From NCBI GenBank assembly GCA_000388065.2, contig KB932204.1: a DNA stretch of 9,465 nucleotides; one strand, given 5' to 3'. The DNA is from Fonticula alba ATCC 38817. Its lineage: Eukaryota > Protista > Nucleariida. Positions 1,689-9,465 of the stretch are shown in pieces (position 1 is the stretch's first letter; every line of letters starts with the position of its first letter). Position numbers and translations under genes: made by a program. Below the pieces are notes generated by a model. That model was not told the origin of the DNA and made no database searches. It saw nothing but the letters and a program-made list of their open reading frames with translations.

Positions 1689-2840
1689 CCATGCCAGCTG
1701 TCTCGGCGGTTTGCCGTGGACTNNNNNNNNNNNNNNNNNNNNNNNNNNNNNNNNNNNNNNNNNNNNNNNNNNNNNNNNNNNNNNNNNNNNNNNNNNNNNN
1801 NNNNNNNNNNNNNNNNNNNNNNNNNNNNNNNNNNNNNNNNNNNNNNNNNNNNNNNNNNNNNNNNNNNNNNNNNNNNNNNNNNNNNNNNNNNNNNNNNNNG
1901 TGCCGGCGCCAGCGGGCATCGAGCGATATCCTCATCGTGCGCGGGCCCAGTTGCGCGCCCCTCCCCCTCCTTTCCCTCCCTTGTCCCCCCTCCGTTGCCT
2001 TCCCTCCGTTGCTTGCCCTCCGTGGCCCCTCCTCCGTTGTTTTCTTCCCCCCTCTCCCCCCTCCCTCCCTCCCCCCTCCCTCGCCCTCTCCCTGCGTCTG
2101 CCTCTCCGCTCCTACCATCGCCCGAACCTCACCAGTCCCACTGACCCCCCCCCCCCCCCCTCTCCCCCCTCCCTCAATGTGGTATCCTCCTGGCGATGCG
2201 CCCCTGCCCCCGGGCATGCCCCCACTGACGTGCGACGTGCCGCCCTGCCTTTTCAGCCTTGGTCCTGTCCCCGGAGCAACTCCGGTACTTCCACACCCTG
2301 GACCGGCGGCTCATGCTCCTGGCACCGTCCTCCTTCACCCAGTGCTTCTGCGGGCTGGCCTGCCATCCGGATGCCTGCTGCTATGTCCGCGTGTCGACCA
2401 CCCTGCCCCCGCTGTGGCTCCTGTCCGACGACACCATCGACCAGCTGGCCACCCCGGTGGAGCTGGCCAGCCCGGCGGCGTCCGGCTCCCGGACGGCGTC
2501 CAAGACCCCGGCGCCGCCGGCCGGCCCGGTGCCCAGCCCCGCCCACTCGGCCTGCGATCTGGTCCCCTTCTACTCGCGCCTGCGGCTCATCAGCGACAAG
2601 GCGTCCCTCCTGTCCCTGTCGACCCTCAGCACGCCGGCCGGCTTGGTGTGCCTCTCCAGCCTCCTGACGCACCTGGCCCTGCCGGCGGCCGCGGCATTCG
2701 GCGACTCGGTCGATGGCCCCGCCGGGGGGGCCTCCTCGGGGGGCCTGGCCACCGGCGATGCCGCCGGCGCCTCGACCGGCGGCGCCGGGTCTCACGAGTC
2801 CCCCTCCGGCCTGGCGGCCCGGGCATCGGCCATGCGCTGG

Positions 2841-2878
<38 letters not shown>

Positions 2879-5632
2879 CAGCAGTGGTGGCGGCGGCGGC
2901 GGCAGCGGCGGCGTCGGCGTCGGCGGCAACCCCGTGGACCGGGATCTGCCCGGGCATGGGGCTCCTGGCGGCCCGGCGACCGGGCCGGCCGGGGCATCTG
3001 GCCGGCCGGCCTCGGCTCTGCAGCAGGCCGCCCCGACGGCCATCCCGTCGCCGGCGGCGCAGCTGTCCAACCGGGTGTCGCAGCTCCTGCCCATCAGCTC
3101 GTCGATCAGCCGCTACGCGCGCTTTGTCTACTGCCTGAACGGGCTGCCCTCGTTGACGGCCAGCAATGTGGCCTCGCTGGCCGTGCGCAACATCTTCCTC
3201 GGGCTGACGGGCAACCTGGCCCGGCTGGCTCGGAAGGATGCCCCCTCATGGCCCGGGTCCCTGCCTCCGCTGGTGCCGGTGCACGTGCTGTCCCTGCTGG
3301 CGGCCATCATCGAGTCGCGCCTCTTTTCCCTGTACACCGCCCGCGGGGACTTGGACGCCCGCGACTCGACCAGCAGCATGAGCAGCATCCTGGCGTCGGC
3401 GGCGGCGGCCGCGGCCTCGGGCAATCCCGGCGACCCGGGCGCCATCCGGCAGCACCGCTTCTCCAAGAAGAGCCCGAACATCCTGCAGCTGGAGTTCGAG
3501 CATCCGCACCTGCCACACCTGACCTTCCAGGTGTCGCTCTTGGAGTTCAACACCCCGCTGCAGCTGACCGGCCCCGGGGCCACCGGGGCCGGGGTGGATT
3601 ATGCGTCCCTGGTGGAGGGCGACACGCCGGCCGTCGGCCCGGCCGGCACGGCGCCCCTCATGATCCACGACCAGGTGGTGGACATCTGCTGCTTCTTCCA
3701 GCCGGCCGGGGCGGCAAGCGACAAGTCCGAGGCCGGGGCCTCCGGGGGGCCGGGGGCCATGCCCGGGTCGGCTTCCGGGCATCCCCATGGCCCGGGGTCC
3801 CCGGCGGCGGCCATCCGCCAGCTGGTCGAGTGTCTGACCCGGCCGCTGCCCGGCCTGGCCGGCCAGGGGATCCTGCACCCGGTCTTCCGCGAGGGGCTGC
3901 TTGCGGATGTCCTCAGCATCGGGGTCGACTCGACCTACAACTCGGTTTGCCCGCGCGAGACCACCTGCACGCCGGACAGCTGCCTGCTCATGCAGGCCGA
4001 ATTCGAGGCGCCCTTCCTGCACTCCGGCAGCGAGCCCGCCCCGGACCCTGGGGCCGCCTCTCCCAGCCCGGCCCGATGCCTGGGGTCGCACTATGCCGGC
4101 TCCGGCCGCGGCAGCCTGGCGCACATCCCCCACGCCTCTTTGGCCCTCCAGTCGGAGGTCTTCATCCGCGCGCCGACGCTGGCCGGTACGCCGCCTTGCC
4201 CCCATGCCTGCCGCGGGGTGTGCGCATGGCCACGTCGCATCGCTCCTCCCCCTCCCCATGCTAACTCCTCCTCCTCCCCCCCCCCCCCTCTCCCCCCCGC
4301 CCAGCTGCGCCCTGGTTCCGCATGGAGATGTCCATCTACTCCAATGGCGCCCTGCTCTTTGGGCCCTCTCCGCCCGAGAGCATCCCCCTTCACATGCCTG
4401 TGCATGAGGTGCCCACGACGGCTGACGCGCGCGAAGGCGGCCGCTCGCAGGCCTCCTTCTCCGGGCCCGACCGGCAGATCATGCTGTCCAACACCCTGAT
4501 CCACTTGCACCCCCACGAAAAGGAGATCCATCTGTACGGCCCCCGGTGTGCCCCCCTTGCCTCGCGTCTCGGGCCGCTTCCCCCCCCCCCCCCCTTCTAA
4601 CCTCCGTGCCCGTCCGCCTGCGCCCATGCCCACAGCATCTCCCACTCGATCATGCTGATGATTTGCATCCCGAATGGTGATGAGTTCGACCGCTGGACCA
4701 CACAGCTGATTCCCTTCGTGACGGAGCAGCTCCTGCCCCAGTCGCTGAAGCCCTGGGAATGGCCACACCTGATCCGGTCCCACCTGTCATCTGCACGGCC
4801 TTTGGTCGCTGCATCTGCCGCGGCCGCGGCCGCCAGCACGGCCTCCTCCTCGGCCAAGACCGCCCCCGCTTCCGAGTCGGCCGGCGGATCCACGGCCCTT
4901 GGCTCGCTGGACGATCTGGCGCCCGGCGGCGCGCCGGCCGGAGCGCCGGCCGATGCGCCGGACCCCCAGGCCGCCGAGTTGCCCAACGCCGGGGTCCTGC
5001 CACCAGCGGCTGCCTCCGAGCACCCGCACCAGCCGCCCCGGCTGTCGCCCGCCTCGCCGACGGCCCCCGCCGCCCCGGCTGCCGGCAGCGGCAGCGGCAG
5101 CGGCAGCGGCAGCAGCTCTGGCAGCCGGTTCATGGGCCGCATGCGCAACCCCGCCAAGAAAATCCAGTCCTGGCGGCTGTCCCTCTCCTCCAGCCAGCAC
5201 TCGTCGTCGGGATCCGGCTCCTCGACGAAGGCCGCCAGCGCCGAGGCGGCGGCCGCGGACCCGGCCGACACGACGACCGTTTCCCTGGCCGCGGCCGACG
5301 CGCCTCCCCGGCGCCCGACCGTCCACTATCGGTCCGGCTCCAATGACTATCTGGAGACATTCAAGTCGTTCATGCGCATGCCGGGCAACTTCAGCAGCAG
5401 CAGCAGCTCCTCGCTGGCCGGGCGCCATTCCGGCGGGTCTTCCCGCGATCCGTCCAGCTCGCTGGCCTCCGGCAGCGGCTCTGGCGATGACTCGATGAGC
5501 CAGTTGGAAGATTCGTTTGTCCTGCTGGAGGACCCGGACCCGGTGTCGCCCCGGCGCATGGTGGGGTCCCTCTCGCGCGAGGACCTGCCGGCGGACCGCT
5601 GCCCGGACATCACCATCACCGCCGAGGCCGAT

Positions 5633-5669
<37 letters not shown>

Positions 5670-6127
5670 ATCGGCCGGCCCCCCTCGGGGGCCCCTCGCT
5701 GCCTGTGGACATGCTGCTGGACTCGCCGAGTGACGCGCTGGTCGCCGGTCGGGCGGCGGCCCCGGGGCCGGCTGCCGAGCTTGAAACGACCACAACCCCG
5801 GGGCCGGGCTTGAGCAACATGTCTCTGGGCTCCAGCAATGTGTCCGTCTCGTCGACGACCGCCGGCGCGGAGGATGCCGCCGAAGCGGCCGCCAAGGACC
5901 TGGCCGCGGCCAAATTCCCCCACCGGTCCTTCCTGAATCGCTTCTACTCGCTCTTCTGGTTCACCTACCGCCGGGACTTCCCCCGAATCGAGCCCTCGGC
6001 CTTCACCTCGGATGCCGGGTGGGGGTGCATGCTGCGGACTTCGCAGATGCTCCTGGCCGAGGCGTATGCCAGGGTTCTCCTGGCGCCGGGGTTCCTGGCC
6101 TTCCAGCTGGATTCCGCGGCCAGTGTC

Positions 6128-6158
<31 letters not shown>

Positions 6159-7597
6159 GCAGCAGCTCCTTCTCCGACACCGGCGGGAGCCCCGCCCCTC
6201 GGCCGACCCGGTCAACCGACACCAGCCGATGGGTGTTGGACCAGGCCCCGAAGAAGTACAACCGCCTGGTCAATTACCGGGCCCTGCTGACCTGGTTCGC
6301 GGACTACCCCTCGGCCTCGTTCGGCATCCAGCAATTTGCCCAAGTGGGCCGGCAGTTTAACCGCCGGATTGGCGAGTGGTTCGGGCCCCTGACCTCGGCG
6401 CTGGTCATCCGCCAGCTGATGGCCCAGCATGATCGCCGGCGCCTGGCGGTCTACATCAACCGGTACAACAGCATCTACTCGGATTTGGCCCTGCTGACGG
6501 CGGCCGACCCGGTGACCGGCCAATGGCGGCCGCTGTTGATTCTGCTGCCCCTGCGCCTGGGCCCCGAGGCGCTGATCGAGCCGCGGCACTTTGCCTGTGT
6601 CCGGGGGTTCCTCCACCTGCCCTGGAGCGTGGGCATCGCCGGTGGCCGGCCCAGCAAGAGCCTCTACTTTGTGGCCAGCCGCGGCCCGCGGGAGCTCATG
6701 TTCCTGGACCCGCACTCGATCAATCCCCATGTGGACCCGTCCCAGCTGCGGATGTTCCCCTCGGAGACGCACCACTGCACCAATGTCCGATCGATGTCGG
6801 TCGAGCAGATGGATCCCAACATGCTGGTGGGCTTCATCGTGCGGACCCCGTCGGAGTTCCGGGACTTCATGCGGCATGTGCGCCGTGGCCCGCCGCTGTC
6901 GGCCATGGCCGACAGCACGCCGGCCTCCGGGGCAGCCCCGGGCGGCGGCCCCGGCAGTGGCCCCTCCTCGGGCGGGTCGTCCAGCTCCGGGGCCAGTTCC
7001 TCCGGCGCCGGGCCGACCCTGGCCGCGGTGGACACCTCGCGCTATGATGGCTGGCCGTCGGTCATCGAGGAGTCCCCGCACTTCCACTACCTGGAGTATG
7101 TGGAAGAGATGGTGTCCACGGGGATCTGGCCAGCCGAGTATGGCCGGCAGCAGATCGAGCGCCGGCGCTCCTCGGCCGAGATCCTGACCGCCATGATGCG
7201 GCCCCGGTCGTCGGGCCCGGCTGCTGACCCTCTGCCGGACTTGCGGCCGCCGGTGCGTGCCGTGTCGGCCGGCCGCCGGCCGGCCCACCATCTGTCCTCG
7301 GTTACCGGGGGCAGCGGGACGGCCTCCTCGGCCTCCAGCATGTACGAGCGCTCGGATGGCGGGTATCTGCGCCCGGGCAACACCGGGCACACGACGGCCA
7401 CCTTGCGCTCGGCGCCCTCCACCCCCCCGTCGGCATCGGGCGCGGTCGCGGCATCGGCCTCCCTGGGCACCCTGCATGCTCCGGCTGGCAGCCTGGCCGG
7501 CTCCTTCGCCGACGACGATGACAGCGACCTGGCAGCCTTCGTCACGCCGACCGGGGTCGATGGCAGTGTCCTCGGGCTGTCCCCTCACCATTCCTAG
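1..7597 (+). CDS. Multi-exon gene, 5'-partial: large protein with unassigned N-terminal/central regions, a PH-like domain and a C-terminal ATG4 (peptidase C54) domain. Model: join(<1..759,969..1589,1698..gap..~1936,2257..4185,4305..4545,4636..7597)
   Basis: Introns 760-968, 1590-1697, 4186-4304 and 4546-4635 each have a GT donor, a CTRAC branch point, a C-rich tract and a CAG acceptor. Each is phase-compatible with the C/G-ending coding frame on both sides. No stop occurs in the spliced 2257-7597 frame until TAG 7595-7597. The connection across the N gap (1723-1899) is unverified. Confidence 0.7.
760..968 (+). other. Spliceosomal intron (209 nt, phase 0)
   Basis: GTGCGT at 760, CTCAC at 911-915, C-rich tract, CTGCAG ending at 968. 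It joins frame 1 (...DLSA) to frame 3 (SDFVITKH...). Confidence 0.8.
969..1589 (+). CDS. Internal exon (207 codons), mostly disordered, with the acidic motif SLDSLDDDFFDVNTEAFDF
   Basis: Frame 3 is open with coding-like codon usage between the AG at 968 and GTGCGT at 1590. Confidence 0.8.
1590..1697 (+). other. Spliceosomal intron (108 nt, phase 0) containing a C30 run
   Basis: GTGCGT at 1590, GCTAAC at 1646-1651, poly-C at 1658-1687, CCAG ending at 1697. Confidence 0.8.
1698..1722 (+). CDS. Start of an internal exon (LSRRFAVD...) that runs into the assembly gap
   Basis: In frame with the preceding exon after splicing. Its 3' end is hidden by Ns. Confidence 0.65.
1723..1899. other. Assembly gap (177 N)
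   Basis: Run of Ns seen directly. It begins 35 nt after a C30 homopolymer. Confidence 1.
1937..2256 (+). other. Spliceosomal intron (phase 1); acceptor well supported, donor uncertain
   Basis: C/T-rich interior, CTGAC at 2225-2229, TTTCAG ending at 2256. The best donor is GTGCGC at 1937. Alternatives are GTTGCG at 1950 and GTGCCG at 1900; each is phase 1 in a different frame, and the gap hides which frame is used. Confidence 0.6.
2257..4185 (+). CDS. Large internal exon (about 643 codons): globular-looking segments of unknown family separated by low-complexity S/G/A/P inserts
   Basis: Frame 3 is open (ORF 2259..4499) with coding-like codon bias up to the donor GTACGC at 4186. After that the sequence becomes intron-like. 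Confidence 0.85.
2844..2903 (+). repeat. Coding (AGC)n/(GGC)n trinucleotide repeat encoding poly-Ser then poly-Gly
   Basis: Tandem AGC and GGC units seen directly. Confidence 0.95.
4186..4304 (+). other. Spliceosomal intron (119 nt, phase 1)
   Basis: GTACGC at 4186, CTAAC at 4261-4265, C tract, CCAG ending at 4304. G|CT gives Ala and switches frame 3 to frame 2 (APWFRMEMSIY...). Confidence 0.85.
4305..4545 (+). CDS. Internal exon encoding the middle of the PH-like domain
   Basis: Corresponds to ORF 4322..4600 and is bounded by phase-compatible splice sites. Confidence 0.8.
4546..4635 (+). other. Spliceosomal intron (90 nt, phase 2) joining the upstream exons to the ATG4 exon
   Basis: GTGTGC at 4546, C tract, TTCTAAC at 4595-4601, CACAG ending at 4635. 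CG|C gives Arg and the junction reads HLYGPR-ISHSIMLMIC. Confidence 0.8.
4636..7597 (+). CDS. ATG4: Terminal exon (987 codons including the stop) containing the ATG4 cysteine protease domain
   Basis: Single open frame to TAG 7595-7597. Motifs FWFTYRRDF, SDAGWGCMLRTSQMLLA, GEWFGP, LLILLPLRLG, GIAGGRP..SLYF and FLDPH are characteristic of ATG4. Confidence 0.93.
5633..5668 (+). repeat. Coding (GCC)12 encoding poly-Ala12
   Basis: Perfect GCC repeat in the frame of the ATG4 exon. Confidence 0.95.
5930..6880 (+). other. ATG4: Peptidase C54 (ATG4) catalytic domain with intact Cys-Asp-His triad
   Basis: Tyr of FTYR at 5966-5968, Cys of GWGCM at 6026-6028, Trp of WFGP at 6377-6379, Asp at 6707-6709 and His at 6713-6715 (DPH). 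Confidence 0.93.
6128..6166 (+). repeat. Coding (GGC)9(AGC)4 encoding Gly9-Ser, inserted inside the C54 domain
   Basis: Seen directly between the GWGCM helix region and the YRALLTWF segment. Confidence 0.9.
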
Positions 7598-7744
7598 ACG
7601 CTGGCTCCGTCTCACTTTTTAGATTCTTGTGCTCCCCCCTCCCCCCCTCCTCCCTCTCCCTTCACAGACCTTCCCCTTGCTTGCTCCACAGGTGTATTCC
7701 CATGCGACCGCCGCACGCGCCGGTGCATGACCAATATGATCTGC

Positions 7745-7769
7745 GTGTGTGTGTGTGTGTGTGTGTGTG
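7745..7769. repeat. (GT)12 microsatellite
   Basis: Seen directly. Confidence 0.98.
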
Positions 7770-8234
7770 CCCGGTCGGTCGATCGAGCTCATTTCCTCGC
7801 TCCCCCCCGGAAACACACATCATGCAGGCATCCTCGGCGCGCGTGTGTGTGTCCCACTTCCCATAGCAATATACATTTTCCTTCGTGTATCTTTTGCCGG
7901 CCCGTGGCTTCTTGTTGTGCTCTTTCGACACGCGCACGTTCGCACCCGCGCGGGGCGCAACTGTGCTCCCCCCTCGCCGCCTTTTCCATGCCCCATGCCG
8001 ACGTGCGTGGAGGGCCTCCCTCCGGGCCTGGACCTCATATTCCTTCGCCCGGAGGCAGGCACGCCGAATGTGCGAATCCCACTGTCATCGGTGCAGGAGG
8101 AGAGTGCCTCATTGGTTTTGTATGTCACGGCCACCCCGCGTGTCTCGGTCGGCGACATGCACACAGACTGGGGGCAAGAAAAAAGGAAGGAAGGAGAAAA
8201 ACGTGCGCAAAAGAATACCTTGTAGTCCGGGCAA

Positions 8235-8236
<2 letters not shown>

Positions 8237-8283
<47 letters not shown>
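8237..8283. repeat. (AC)23 microsatellite
   Basis: Seen directly. Confidence 0.98.
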
Positions 8284-8930: not shown

Positions 8931-9430
8931 TTAGATGGCACCGCAGTTGTCGATGGTGATCTTGGCGGAGGTGCGGCCGGAGCTGGAGCCGAGGGACTCG
9001 ACCTTCTGGACGACGTCCATACCCTCGACGACGGAGCCGAAGACGGTGTGCTTGCCATCGAGCCAGCTGGTGACAACGGTGGTGATGAAGAACTGAGAGC
9101 CGTTGGTGTTGCGGCCGGCGTTGGCCATGGACAGAAGGCCGGGGCGGTCGTGGGCCAGCTTGAAGTTCTCATCATCGAAGCGAGCACCGTAGATGGACTT
9201 GCCACCGGTGCCGTTGTGGTTGGTGAAGTCACCACCCTGGAGCATGAAGCCGGGGATCACACGGTGGAAGCTGCTGCCCTTGAAAGCGGGCTTGCCGGGG
9301 CCGAAGATGGTGCCAGCCTCGCCGGTGCAGAGCTCGTAGAAGTTCTTGCAGGTGATGGGGCAGACATCGAAGCGGAGCTCCATGACAATGCGGCCGAGGG
9401 GGGAGCCGTTGGCGCTGACGTCGAAGAAGA
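8931..9430 (-). CDS. Cyclophilin-type peptidyl-prolyl cis-trans isomerase (CypA-like), last exon; the first exon lies outside the window
   Basis: Reads (V)[18 protein letters not shown]...[15 protein letters not shown]...[17 protein letters not shown]...[10 protein letters not shown]...CGAI-stop. The Arg, Phe, Gln, Trp and His active-site residues are present. The exon opens after the acceptor CGCAG with a phase 1 remainder (TC). Confidence 0.97.
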
Positions 9431-9465
9431 CTGCGGGCGGGGCGCGGCACGAGGTGAGCGGCGGG
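9431..9465 (-). other. 3' end of the cyclophilin intron
   Basis: The minus strand reads CCCGCCGCTCACCTCGTGCCGCGCCCCGCCCGCAG, with branch CTCAC at 9458-9454 and the AG ending at 9431. Confidence 0.85.

Follow-up and report, generated by a model that had tools for sequence, protein, structure and literature searches.

The locus of Fonticula alba studied here raises the question of whether an ATG4 protease can form the rear part of a far larger protein and, if so, what the remainder of that protein is. ATG4 is usually regarded as a small soluble enzyme; the canonical members of the family, such as yeast Atg4 and human ATG4A-D (MEROPS C54, Pfam PF03416), have 350-500 aa. It is still an open matter what prevents the enzyme from removing ATG8 from autophagosomes during their growth. 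A sequence-only reading of the 9,465-nt stretch of DNA analysed here, referred to as the window, had proposed that its ATG4, despite an apparent start of its own at ATG 4652, forms the C-terminal portion of a giant multidomain protein. We found no paper linking Fonticula to ATG4 or autophagy. The results presented below indicate that one gene probably gives one long spliced mRNA and a protein at least 2,230 residues long, in which a complete ATG4 occupies the rear third and the rest is lineage-specific.

The RNA evidence consists of spliced contigs from four 2012 runs (X1-X4), which are de Bruijn (Logan) assemblies of short reads and were mapped onto the window; all features given below lie on its + strand. 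The contigs define an exon chain of 17-759, 969-1589, a 193-nt exon, 2257-4185, 4305-4533 and 4636-7597, and every exon junction is bridged by spliced contigs with GT..AG ends. At the key joints the shorter sides measure 64-230 letters, CTAAC branch-site motifs are present and the joints are seen again in independent runs. Coding exon a (1-759, of which contigs cover 17-759) has a GC3 of 0.91 and no in-frame stop; its product has an ordered-looking beginning and then becomes Ser/Pro/Ala/Gly-rich. The contigs over this exon carry at least 242 more upstream letters, so that the transcript extends 5' beyond the window. The following intron (760-968; 209 nt, GTGCGT...CAG) is removed in all four runs, the joint 759/969 having a shorter side of 64-214 letters, and leads to coding exon b (969-1589; 207 codons, GC3 0.89), which is likewise represented by RNA contigs. 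After the next intron (1590-1697; 108 nt, GTGCGT...CTAAC...poly-C...CAG) the chain enters an assembly gap. RNA letters after 1589 match the sequence at 1698, and in X1 and X2 the joint 1589/2257 has 193 letters between its two sides, with a loose-end consensus of 1698-1722 plus unseen bases. Coding exon c (193 nt) starts at 1698, in an interval (1698-1899) of which 1698-1722 is visible and 1723-1899 is a run of N; its visible ends contain no stop, the remaining 168 nt fall in the gap, and 193 + 2 nt preserves the frame. The joints 759/969 and 1589/2257 thus bear out the upstream link over the gap that had been suggested from the letters of the window.

Coding exon d (2257-4185; 643 codons, GC3 0.93), over which contigs begin at 2257 fused to upstream letters, is followed by intron 1 (4186-4304; 119 nt, GTACGC...CTAAC...CAG), exactly where the sequence-only reading had placed it. 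The GT..AG joint 4185/4305, for which that reading had called for RNA data, is crossed by spliced contigs of X2 and X3 with shorter sides of 183 and 68 letters, respectively. Coding exon e (4305-4533; 76 codons, GC3 0.87), also drawn from RNA contigs, forms the middle of a PH-like stretch that is considered below. For intron 2 (4534-4635; 102 nt, GTACGG...CTAAC...CAG) the proposed acceptor was right, the exon resuming at 4636, but the proposed donor 4546 has to be replaced by 4534: the GT..AG joint 4533/4636 is present in X1, X2 and X4, with a shorter side of 230 letters in X1 and X4. The shift of 12 nt leaves the frame unaffected, and the protein reads ...HEKEIH-L-ISHSIMLM... across the junction. 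The last coding exon, exon f (4636-7597), comprises 986 codons and the stop TAG (7595-7597); it encodes the C-terminal helix of the PH-like stretch, a low-complexity linker of ~380 aa, the C54 domain and a tail of ~240 aa. Beyond it lies the 3' UTR (7598-7887), over which RNA contigs continue to 7863 or 7887. The contigs are short, none being a single molecule covering the entire ORF, and they break at low-complexity tracts (2831-2934, 5075-5123, 5607-5677 and 6117-6178).

A single frame is kept over all junctions, the 193-nt gap exon included, and once the introns are removed no stop separates the upstream ORF from C54. Counted from 2259, the ORF runs for 1,705 aa before its stop; the upstream exons within the window bring it to ~2,230 codons, in agreement with the earlier estimates of ~1,700 and ~2,200 aa. 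GC3 in the proposed frame is 0.87-0.93 in every exon, compared with a GC content of 0.75-0.81 in the introns, and the probability that 2,165 codons of the local base composition would lack a stop is ~2e-16; the open frame and the GC3 contrast are therefore more than chance. The genome is 72% GC. The mRNA would carry at least 6.7 kb of coding sequence in the window, with its 5' end upstream of the window. The exon e/f junction had no matches among the metagenome contigs searched.

Two other accounts of this transcript have to be weighed. Two adjacent genes might have been joined by read-through, by chimeric short-read contigs or by mis-assembly near the gap; such a gap does lie in the region, and obviously chimeric low-complexity joints occur in the same contig tables. 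Those joints have sides of 20-23 letters, however, whereas the relevant ones combine long sides with GT..AG ends, CTAAC motifs and recurrence in independent runs, and an unbroken frame with a GC3 of ~0.9 runs from the upstream ORF into C54, which makes an artefact very improbable. The locus might also give two products, the giant protein and an ATG4 of ~981 aa made from ATG 4652, through an internal start or an intron-2-retaining RNA, with the shorter one as the main working enzyme. This ATG sits 16 nt past the acceptor, as had been pointed out, and no other start codon separates it from the in-frame TAA (4598-4600) of intron 2, which does lie inside a CTAAC motif (4597-4601). One contig piece begins at 4576, within intron 2, a hint of some unspliced RNA or an alternative start, and contig depth over 6179-7863 is 3-5 times that of the 5' exons. 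Yet depth climbs gradually from 5' to 3' (~5 to ~25), as from 3' bias, without a step at 4636-4652, and the assembled form over 4533/4636 is spliced in three of the four runs. The rise could also mask a shorter 3' transcript, but the depth of Logan contigs is a poor measure of expression, and we regard a second product as quite unlikely. No exact match to the 981-aa ORF product was on record. The RNA junctions instead support the proposal that the ATG4 is the C-terminal portion of one very long spliced ORF rather than a gene of its own.

What this ORF ends in is a C54 peptidase by both identity and fold. The catalytic domain (5924-6874) matches Pfam PF03416 with E 1.8e-76 and 257.7 bits (gathering cut-off 25) over model positions 2-275 of 276, and matches human ATG4B with 7e-42; a search with the whole of exon f had given three matches swamped by low-complexity words and was rerun with the C54 region alone. 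By alignment, the catalytic Cys codon TGC (6026-6028) corresponds to Cys74 of human ATG4B and falls in the invariant column C65, while the catalytic Asp (6707-6709) and His (6713-6715) of the motif LDPH correspond to Asp278 and His280. GWGCMLR, LDPH and GEWFGP align with C74, D278/H280 and the substrate-gating Trp, W142, in invariant columns, and in an alignment of 41 sequences the protein retains each of the 28 invariant columns. An AF2 model of the domain has a pTM of 0.72 and a core pLDDT >90; the best nine Foldseek matches of this model are ATG4A/B, with E values of ~1e-26 to 2e-27 and TM scores of 0.72-0.85 (normalized by target length). In the C54 tree the domain is weakly adjacent to fungal ATG4s (SH-aLRT 81) on a long branch (1.57), a position that weakly suggests an ordinary ATG4 orthologue.

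The Pfam match, the triad and the predicted fold thus agree with the earlier suggestion of a catalytically intact domain, and the rear third of the protein is predicted to be a complete and catalytically competent ATG4. Its substrate would most likely be ATG8, the precursor being cut to expose the C-terminal Gly and ATG8 being removed from phosphatidylethanolamine. The protein shares with canonical ATG4s the catalytic domain, the Cys-Asp-His triad, the conserved Trp and a predicted fold superposing on ATG4A/B. It differs in having at least ~1,680 residues before the domain, ~240 after it and a Gly/Ser-rich insertion of ~60 aa inside it.

The residues outside C54 appear to be lineage-specific. 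Searches of Pfam, the PDB and the atlas with the ~1,680 upstream residues returned nothing. For exon d (642 aa), a full HMMER scan of 1.84 billion representative proteins retrieved no homologue, ESM atlas features scored at best <=0.75, to unrelated families, and comparison with the PDB gave linker-like chance matches only; its single-sequence AF2 model has a pLDDT of 37 and is unusable. An orphan by sequence, exon d contains hydrophobic islands as well as poly-Ser and poly-Gly tracts. Ser, Ala, Pro and Gly make up 49-58% of the extension compared with 33% of C54, and the coding repeat tracts (GCA)14, (GGC)13, (GCC)12 and (CGG)9 lie inside the ORF; a search for internal repeats in the protein found none. 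Much of the lineage-specific sequence is of low complexity and would have been built partly by trinucleotide-repeat expansion, leaving a few hydrophobic islands, one of them PH-like. Such islands of normal complexity lie at approximately aa 1-60, 525-680, 800-880, 920-1010, 1040-1110 and 1155-1290 (in-window protein numbering). Transmembrane anchors were considered and rejected, as the two best 19-aa windows reach only 1.8 on the Kyte-Doolittle scale and contain Pro, His and Ser. Two candidate LIR-like motifs were picked up by pattern matching only: the acidic DDDFFDV in exon b (1500-1520) and EDSFVLLED in the linker before C54 (5507-5533). A canonical ATG4 N-terminal block in this linker, where YLETFKSF... 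and DSFVLLED resemble the conserved Mortierella block by eye, was rejected after an unsupportive HMM test. The extension would most plausibly be a flexible arm for regulation or targeting, bearing phosphorylation sites and LIR-like motifs, or else a largely neutral expansion.

A different view of the extension, which develops that of the sequence-only reading, is that the upstream ~1,700 residues fold into several domains, one of them a PH-like domain that binds lipid, and act as a scaffold or targeting module. ATG4 would thereby be anchored at one particular membrane and become a localised deconjugase of ATG8 or another UBL. Several upstream segments are of normal complexity with 35-47% hydrophobic residues, and may therefore be folded domains invisible to single-sequence methods. 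The spliced stretch 4152-4735, in addition, ends in a helix with a Trp typical of PH domains when read by eye. The putative PH domain would span three exons, and the exon pieces scanned singly gave no Pfam PH match at E values up to 10. Proteins in which PH (PF00169) is fused to C54 do exist in environmental eukaryotes: P0124 (533 aa) and P0131 (548 aa), from JGI contigs, carry PH N-terminal of an intact ATG4 domain, the arrangement suspected here. They are compact, however, and their PH domains are recognised by Pfam (44.5 and 29.9 bits), unlike the local stretch; a two-sequence HMM built from these PH domains did not match it, and the two proteins are neither sisters nor nearest relatives of the local ATG4 in the C54 tree. 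No further PH-bearing members were present among 49 metagenome loci related to P0124, all of which cover the C54 part only. We found no description of PH-ATG4 fusions in the literature. One metagenome locus, L003, has a Pfam-empty N-terminus of 377 aa.

A PH-like domain directly before the C54 linker, yielding a membrane-tethered ATG4 with ATG8 deconjugation confined to one compartment, is an unlikely reading; if true, it would parallel the compact fusions of environmental protists and point to a recurrent, undescribed route of ATG4 localisation. For the extension as a whole, the absence of Pfam, PDB and atlas matches and of homologues for the upstream pieces, the lack of a confident fold and a composition that is about half Ser/Ala/Pro/Gly with repeat tracts leave the folded scaffold unsupported, and we judge it unlikely. 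An ATG4 behind a largely low-complexity, lineage-specific extension is the reading that we prefer.

The sequence-only reading had described the architecture as one that it did not recognise. As worded, this is not supported: several lineages of fungi possess ATG4s of 1,200-1,720 aa whose N-terminal regions contain no Pfam domain. The search for long Peptidase_C54 proteins that it had recommended located them in Mortierellomycota (1,350-1,720 aa), Ustilaginomycotina (~1,500 aa), and Tremellales and Rhodotorula (~1,200 aa). The Atg4 of Cryptococcus is large, and its N-terminal region has been described as intrinsically disordered (PMC12723477). The oversized fungal proteins resemble that of Fonticula in having C54 near the C-terminus after a very long Pfam-empty region. 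The Fonticula protein is longer still, contains several islands that are not of low complexity and has nothing in common with them outside C54. Its non-C54 pieces gave no phmmer matches to 122 long ATG4s, and BLASTP against the proteins P0001 and P0008 gave chance matches only. In the Mortierellomycota a conserved N-terminal ATG4 block is followed by an insertion of ~1,000 aa, which accounts for the extra length, and then by the core; this block was not found here, the HMM of the Mortierella block reaching an E value of 0.2 with a match located inside C54. An inherited extension shared with the ATG4s of Mortierellomycota or Basidiomycota therefore finds no backing in these comparisons. The earlier caveat that a long architecture might prove common among ATG4s was thus justified in that oversized fungal forms exist, but not in the sense of a homologous extension. 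As oversized ATG4s are already found in several fungi, the Fonticula protein is an extreme version rather than a new type of enzyme.

A natural ATG4 with ~1,700 extra N-terminal residues could reveal what non-catalytic arms contribute to the regulation or localisation of the protease, and the PH-ATG4 fusions could do the same. Because the extension is an orphan of largely low complexity and comparable fungal ATG4s are known, the immediate value of the locus lies in its corrected gene model, in which a coding exon is largely concealed by the assembly gap and the intron 2 donor lies 12 nt from the earlier proposal.

RNA evidence shows that the ATG4 protease domain of the window is the C-terminal part of a giant protein, as the sequence-only reading had proposed: spliced joints and a shared frame link it to upstream exons, giving at least 2,230 residues. 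The window has a G+C content of 72% and carries an assembly gap (N run) at 1723–1899. Its long open frames lie on the plus strand at 1–759, 969–1589, 2259–4499, 4322–4600 and 4652–7597, and the last contains a full-length Peptidase_C54 (C54, ATG4) match at 5924–6874 (Pfam E = 1.8e-76; exon-translation residues 430–746). Four RNA runs from 2012 (one study, two samples) contain 88–89% of the sampled words of 4000–7600. Contigs from these runs placed on 1900–7899 show two GT..AG joints. The joint 4185|4305 reproduces the first predicted intron exactly. The joint 4533|4636 agrees with the predicted acceptor of the second intron but puts its donor (GTACGG) at 4534 instead of 4546; since these donors differ by 12 nt, the reading frame is the same, and the protein continues across the joint as ...HEKEIH-L-ISHSIMLM.... 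The observation of a giant architecture stands, apart from this 12-nt shift of one donor site.

Further upstream, contigs placed on 1–2600 show the joint 759|969 in all four runs and a joint 1589|2257 that includes 193 extra letters, of which the first correspond to 1698–1722 and the remainder run into the gap. These 193 nt plus 2 nt make a whole number of codons, and no stop codon occurs in the 30 letters visible at either end. The gap conceals about 168 nt of this coding exon, which is seen in the RNA contigs, so that the full open reading frame is unobtainable from the genome sequence alone. The in-window protein comprises about 2,230 residues, including 57 unseen ones. RNA contigs continue 5′ of position 17 for at least 242 letters; hence the gene starts upstream of the window. 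Their 3′ ends fall at 7863–7887, about 270–290 nt beyond the TAG at 7595–7597. GC3 in the proposed frame is 0.87–0.93 in every exon, and the four introns have an overall G+C of 0.75–0.81. Intron donors are GTGCGT or GTACG, a CTAAC branch site is present in three of the four, and a C-rich tract with a CAG acceptor is present in all. At the base composition of the window, 2,165 stop-free codons would arise with a probability of about 2e-16.

Besides the giant product, there may be a minor internal transcript start. The 5′ end of one RNA contig piece lies at 4576, within intron 2 and directly after a poly-C run, which could reflect an alternative start, unspliced RNA or an assembly break at the homopolymer. 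Contig depth, however, is about 5 over the 5′ exons and rises gradually, reaching about 25 at the 3′ end with no step at ATG 4652, which is the pattern that 3′ bias would give. A minor internal start is compatible with these data because the contigs are short and end at repeats.

The protease domain itself matches human ATG4B and ATG4A (phmmer, E = 7e-42 to 5e-39). GWGCMLR (Cys74), LDPH (Asp278, His280) and GEWFGP (Trp142) are kept in the alignment to these two proteins, as are all 28 invariant columns of a 41-sequence alignment. An AF2 model based on that alignment reached a pTM of 0.72 and a core pLDDT above 90, and was poor at a Gly/Ser insertion of about 60 aa and after the C54 domain. The top Foldseek matches were exclusively ATG4A/B chains (E about 1e-26 to 2e-27; target-normalized TM 0.72–0.85). 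A quick maximum-likelihood tree built from 40 C54 domains places the domain on a long branch (1.57), in a weakly supported group (SH-aLRT 81) that includes fungal ATG4s, and not with animal ATG4A/B or C/D. The giant ATG4 can be read as the ordinary ATG4 orthologue of its lineage.

What surrounds this domain is mostly of biased composition. The Ser+Ala+Pro+Gly share is 49% in the 642-residue exon at 2257–4185, 58% in the linker of about 380 aa before C54 and 54% in the tail of about 240 aa after it, versus 33% in C54. The frame includes the coding trinucleotide arrays (GCA)14, (GGC)13, (GCC)12 and (CGG)9; perfect or near-perfect trinucleotide or hexanucleotide arrays lie at 2842–2927, 5083–5125, 5633–5669 and 6127–6154. 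They yield poly-Ser, poly-Gly and poly-Ala tracts, one within C54, and coincide with RNA contig breaks. Low-complexity noise aside, the upstream pieces, linker and tail have no Pfam match even at E = 10. Against 1.84 billion representative proteins, the 642-residue exon had no match with E ≤ 0.001, and it gave no meaningful match in PDB sequences or the ESM atlas; its single-sequence AF2 model was unusable (pLDDT 37). The proposed interpretation is thus supported only in part: nothing here shows a folded multidomain scaffold. Two acidic candidate LIR-like motifs, DDDFFDV (1500–1520) and EDSFVLLED (5507–5533), are present as pattern matches only.

Nor is the architecture, which the sequence-only reading did not recognise, without precedent. 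When proteins of 542–1,725 aa were searched with the C54 region, dozens of oversized ATG4s were returned, from Mortierellomycota (1,350–1,720 aa; the best matches, 31–36% identity), Ustilaginomycotina (about 1,500 aa), Tremellales (about 1,250 aa) and Rhodotorula (about 1,180 aa). Like the giant ATG4, the oversized fungal proteins have a long Pfam-empty region and C54 near the C-terminus; C54 was the sole Pfam domain in the six scanned, and the general layout is thus already known. A published large Cryptococcus Atg4 has a disordered N-terminus, and a truncated core is reported to be enough for its canonical activity (PMC12723477). The extensions are not homologous, however: no non-C54 piece matched any of 122 long ATG4s by phmmer, and pairwise BLASTP against two oversized proteins (P0001, P0008) gave chance matches only. 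The Mortierellomycota ATG4s differ in that a conserved N-terminal ATG4 block is separated from the core by about 1,000 inserted, poorly conserved residues, and an HMM of this block found no counterpart in the giant ATG4. The block (about residues 60–125 of P0008, among P0004–P0043) ends in a WILG-like motif; the internal insertion, and not an additional N-terminal module, accounts for the size of these proteins, and several species have two or three oversized paralogues. By sequence comparison, the giant and fungal proteins look like independent expansions.

We consider it probable that the gene encodes an ordinary ATG4 orthologue whose extension is extreme, lineage-specific and largely of low complexity, with regulatory or targeting value at most. 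A membrane-tethered ATG4 carrying a PH-like module seems unlikely. Between the low-complexity tracts are normal-complexity segments with 35–47% hydrophobic residues, including the spliced, putatively PH-like stretch at 4152–4735, which spans two introns. PH–ATG4 fusions do occur among the conventional-length matches: two JGI proteins, P0124 (533 aa) and P0131 (548 aa), have a Pfam-recognized PH domain preceding C54. Neither PH domain is similar to the stretch at 4152–4735, and neither protein is close to the giant ATG4 in the C54 tree. In these compact eukaryotic-contig fusions (locus L001, 1–1647) the PH domain occupies about residues 21–131 and the ATG4 domain is intact; we found no paper describing the architecture and no further PH-bearing members in a metagenome scan.

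Word-indexed searches (216–688 and 542–1,725 aa) and the exhaustive representative search returned no self-match for any part of the gene; it seems that the protein set of this genome is missing from the searched libraries or that the gene model is unannotated. Downstream, a cyclophilin-type peptidyl-prolyl isomerase gene (PF00160, E = 3e-45) occupies 8934–9465 on the minus strand and runs off the end of the window. It is convergent with the ATG4 gene, and the 1.3 kb interval of the two genes contains the microsatellites (GT)12 at 7745–7769 and (AC)23 at 8237–8283.
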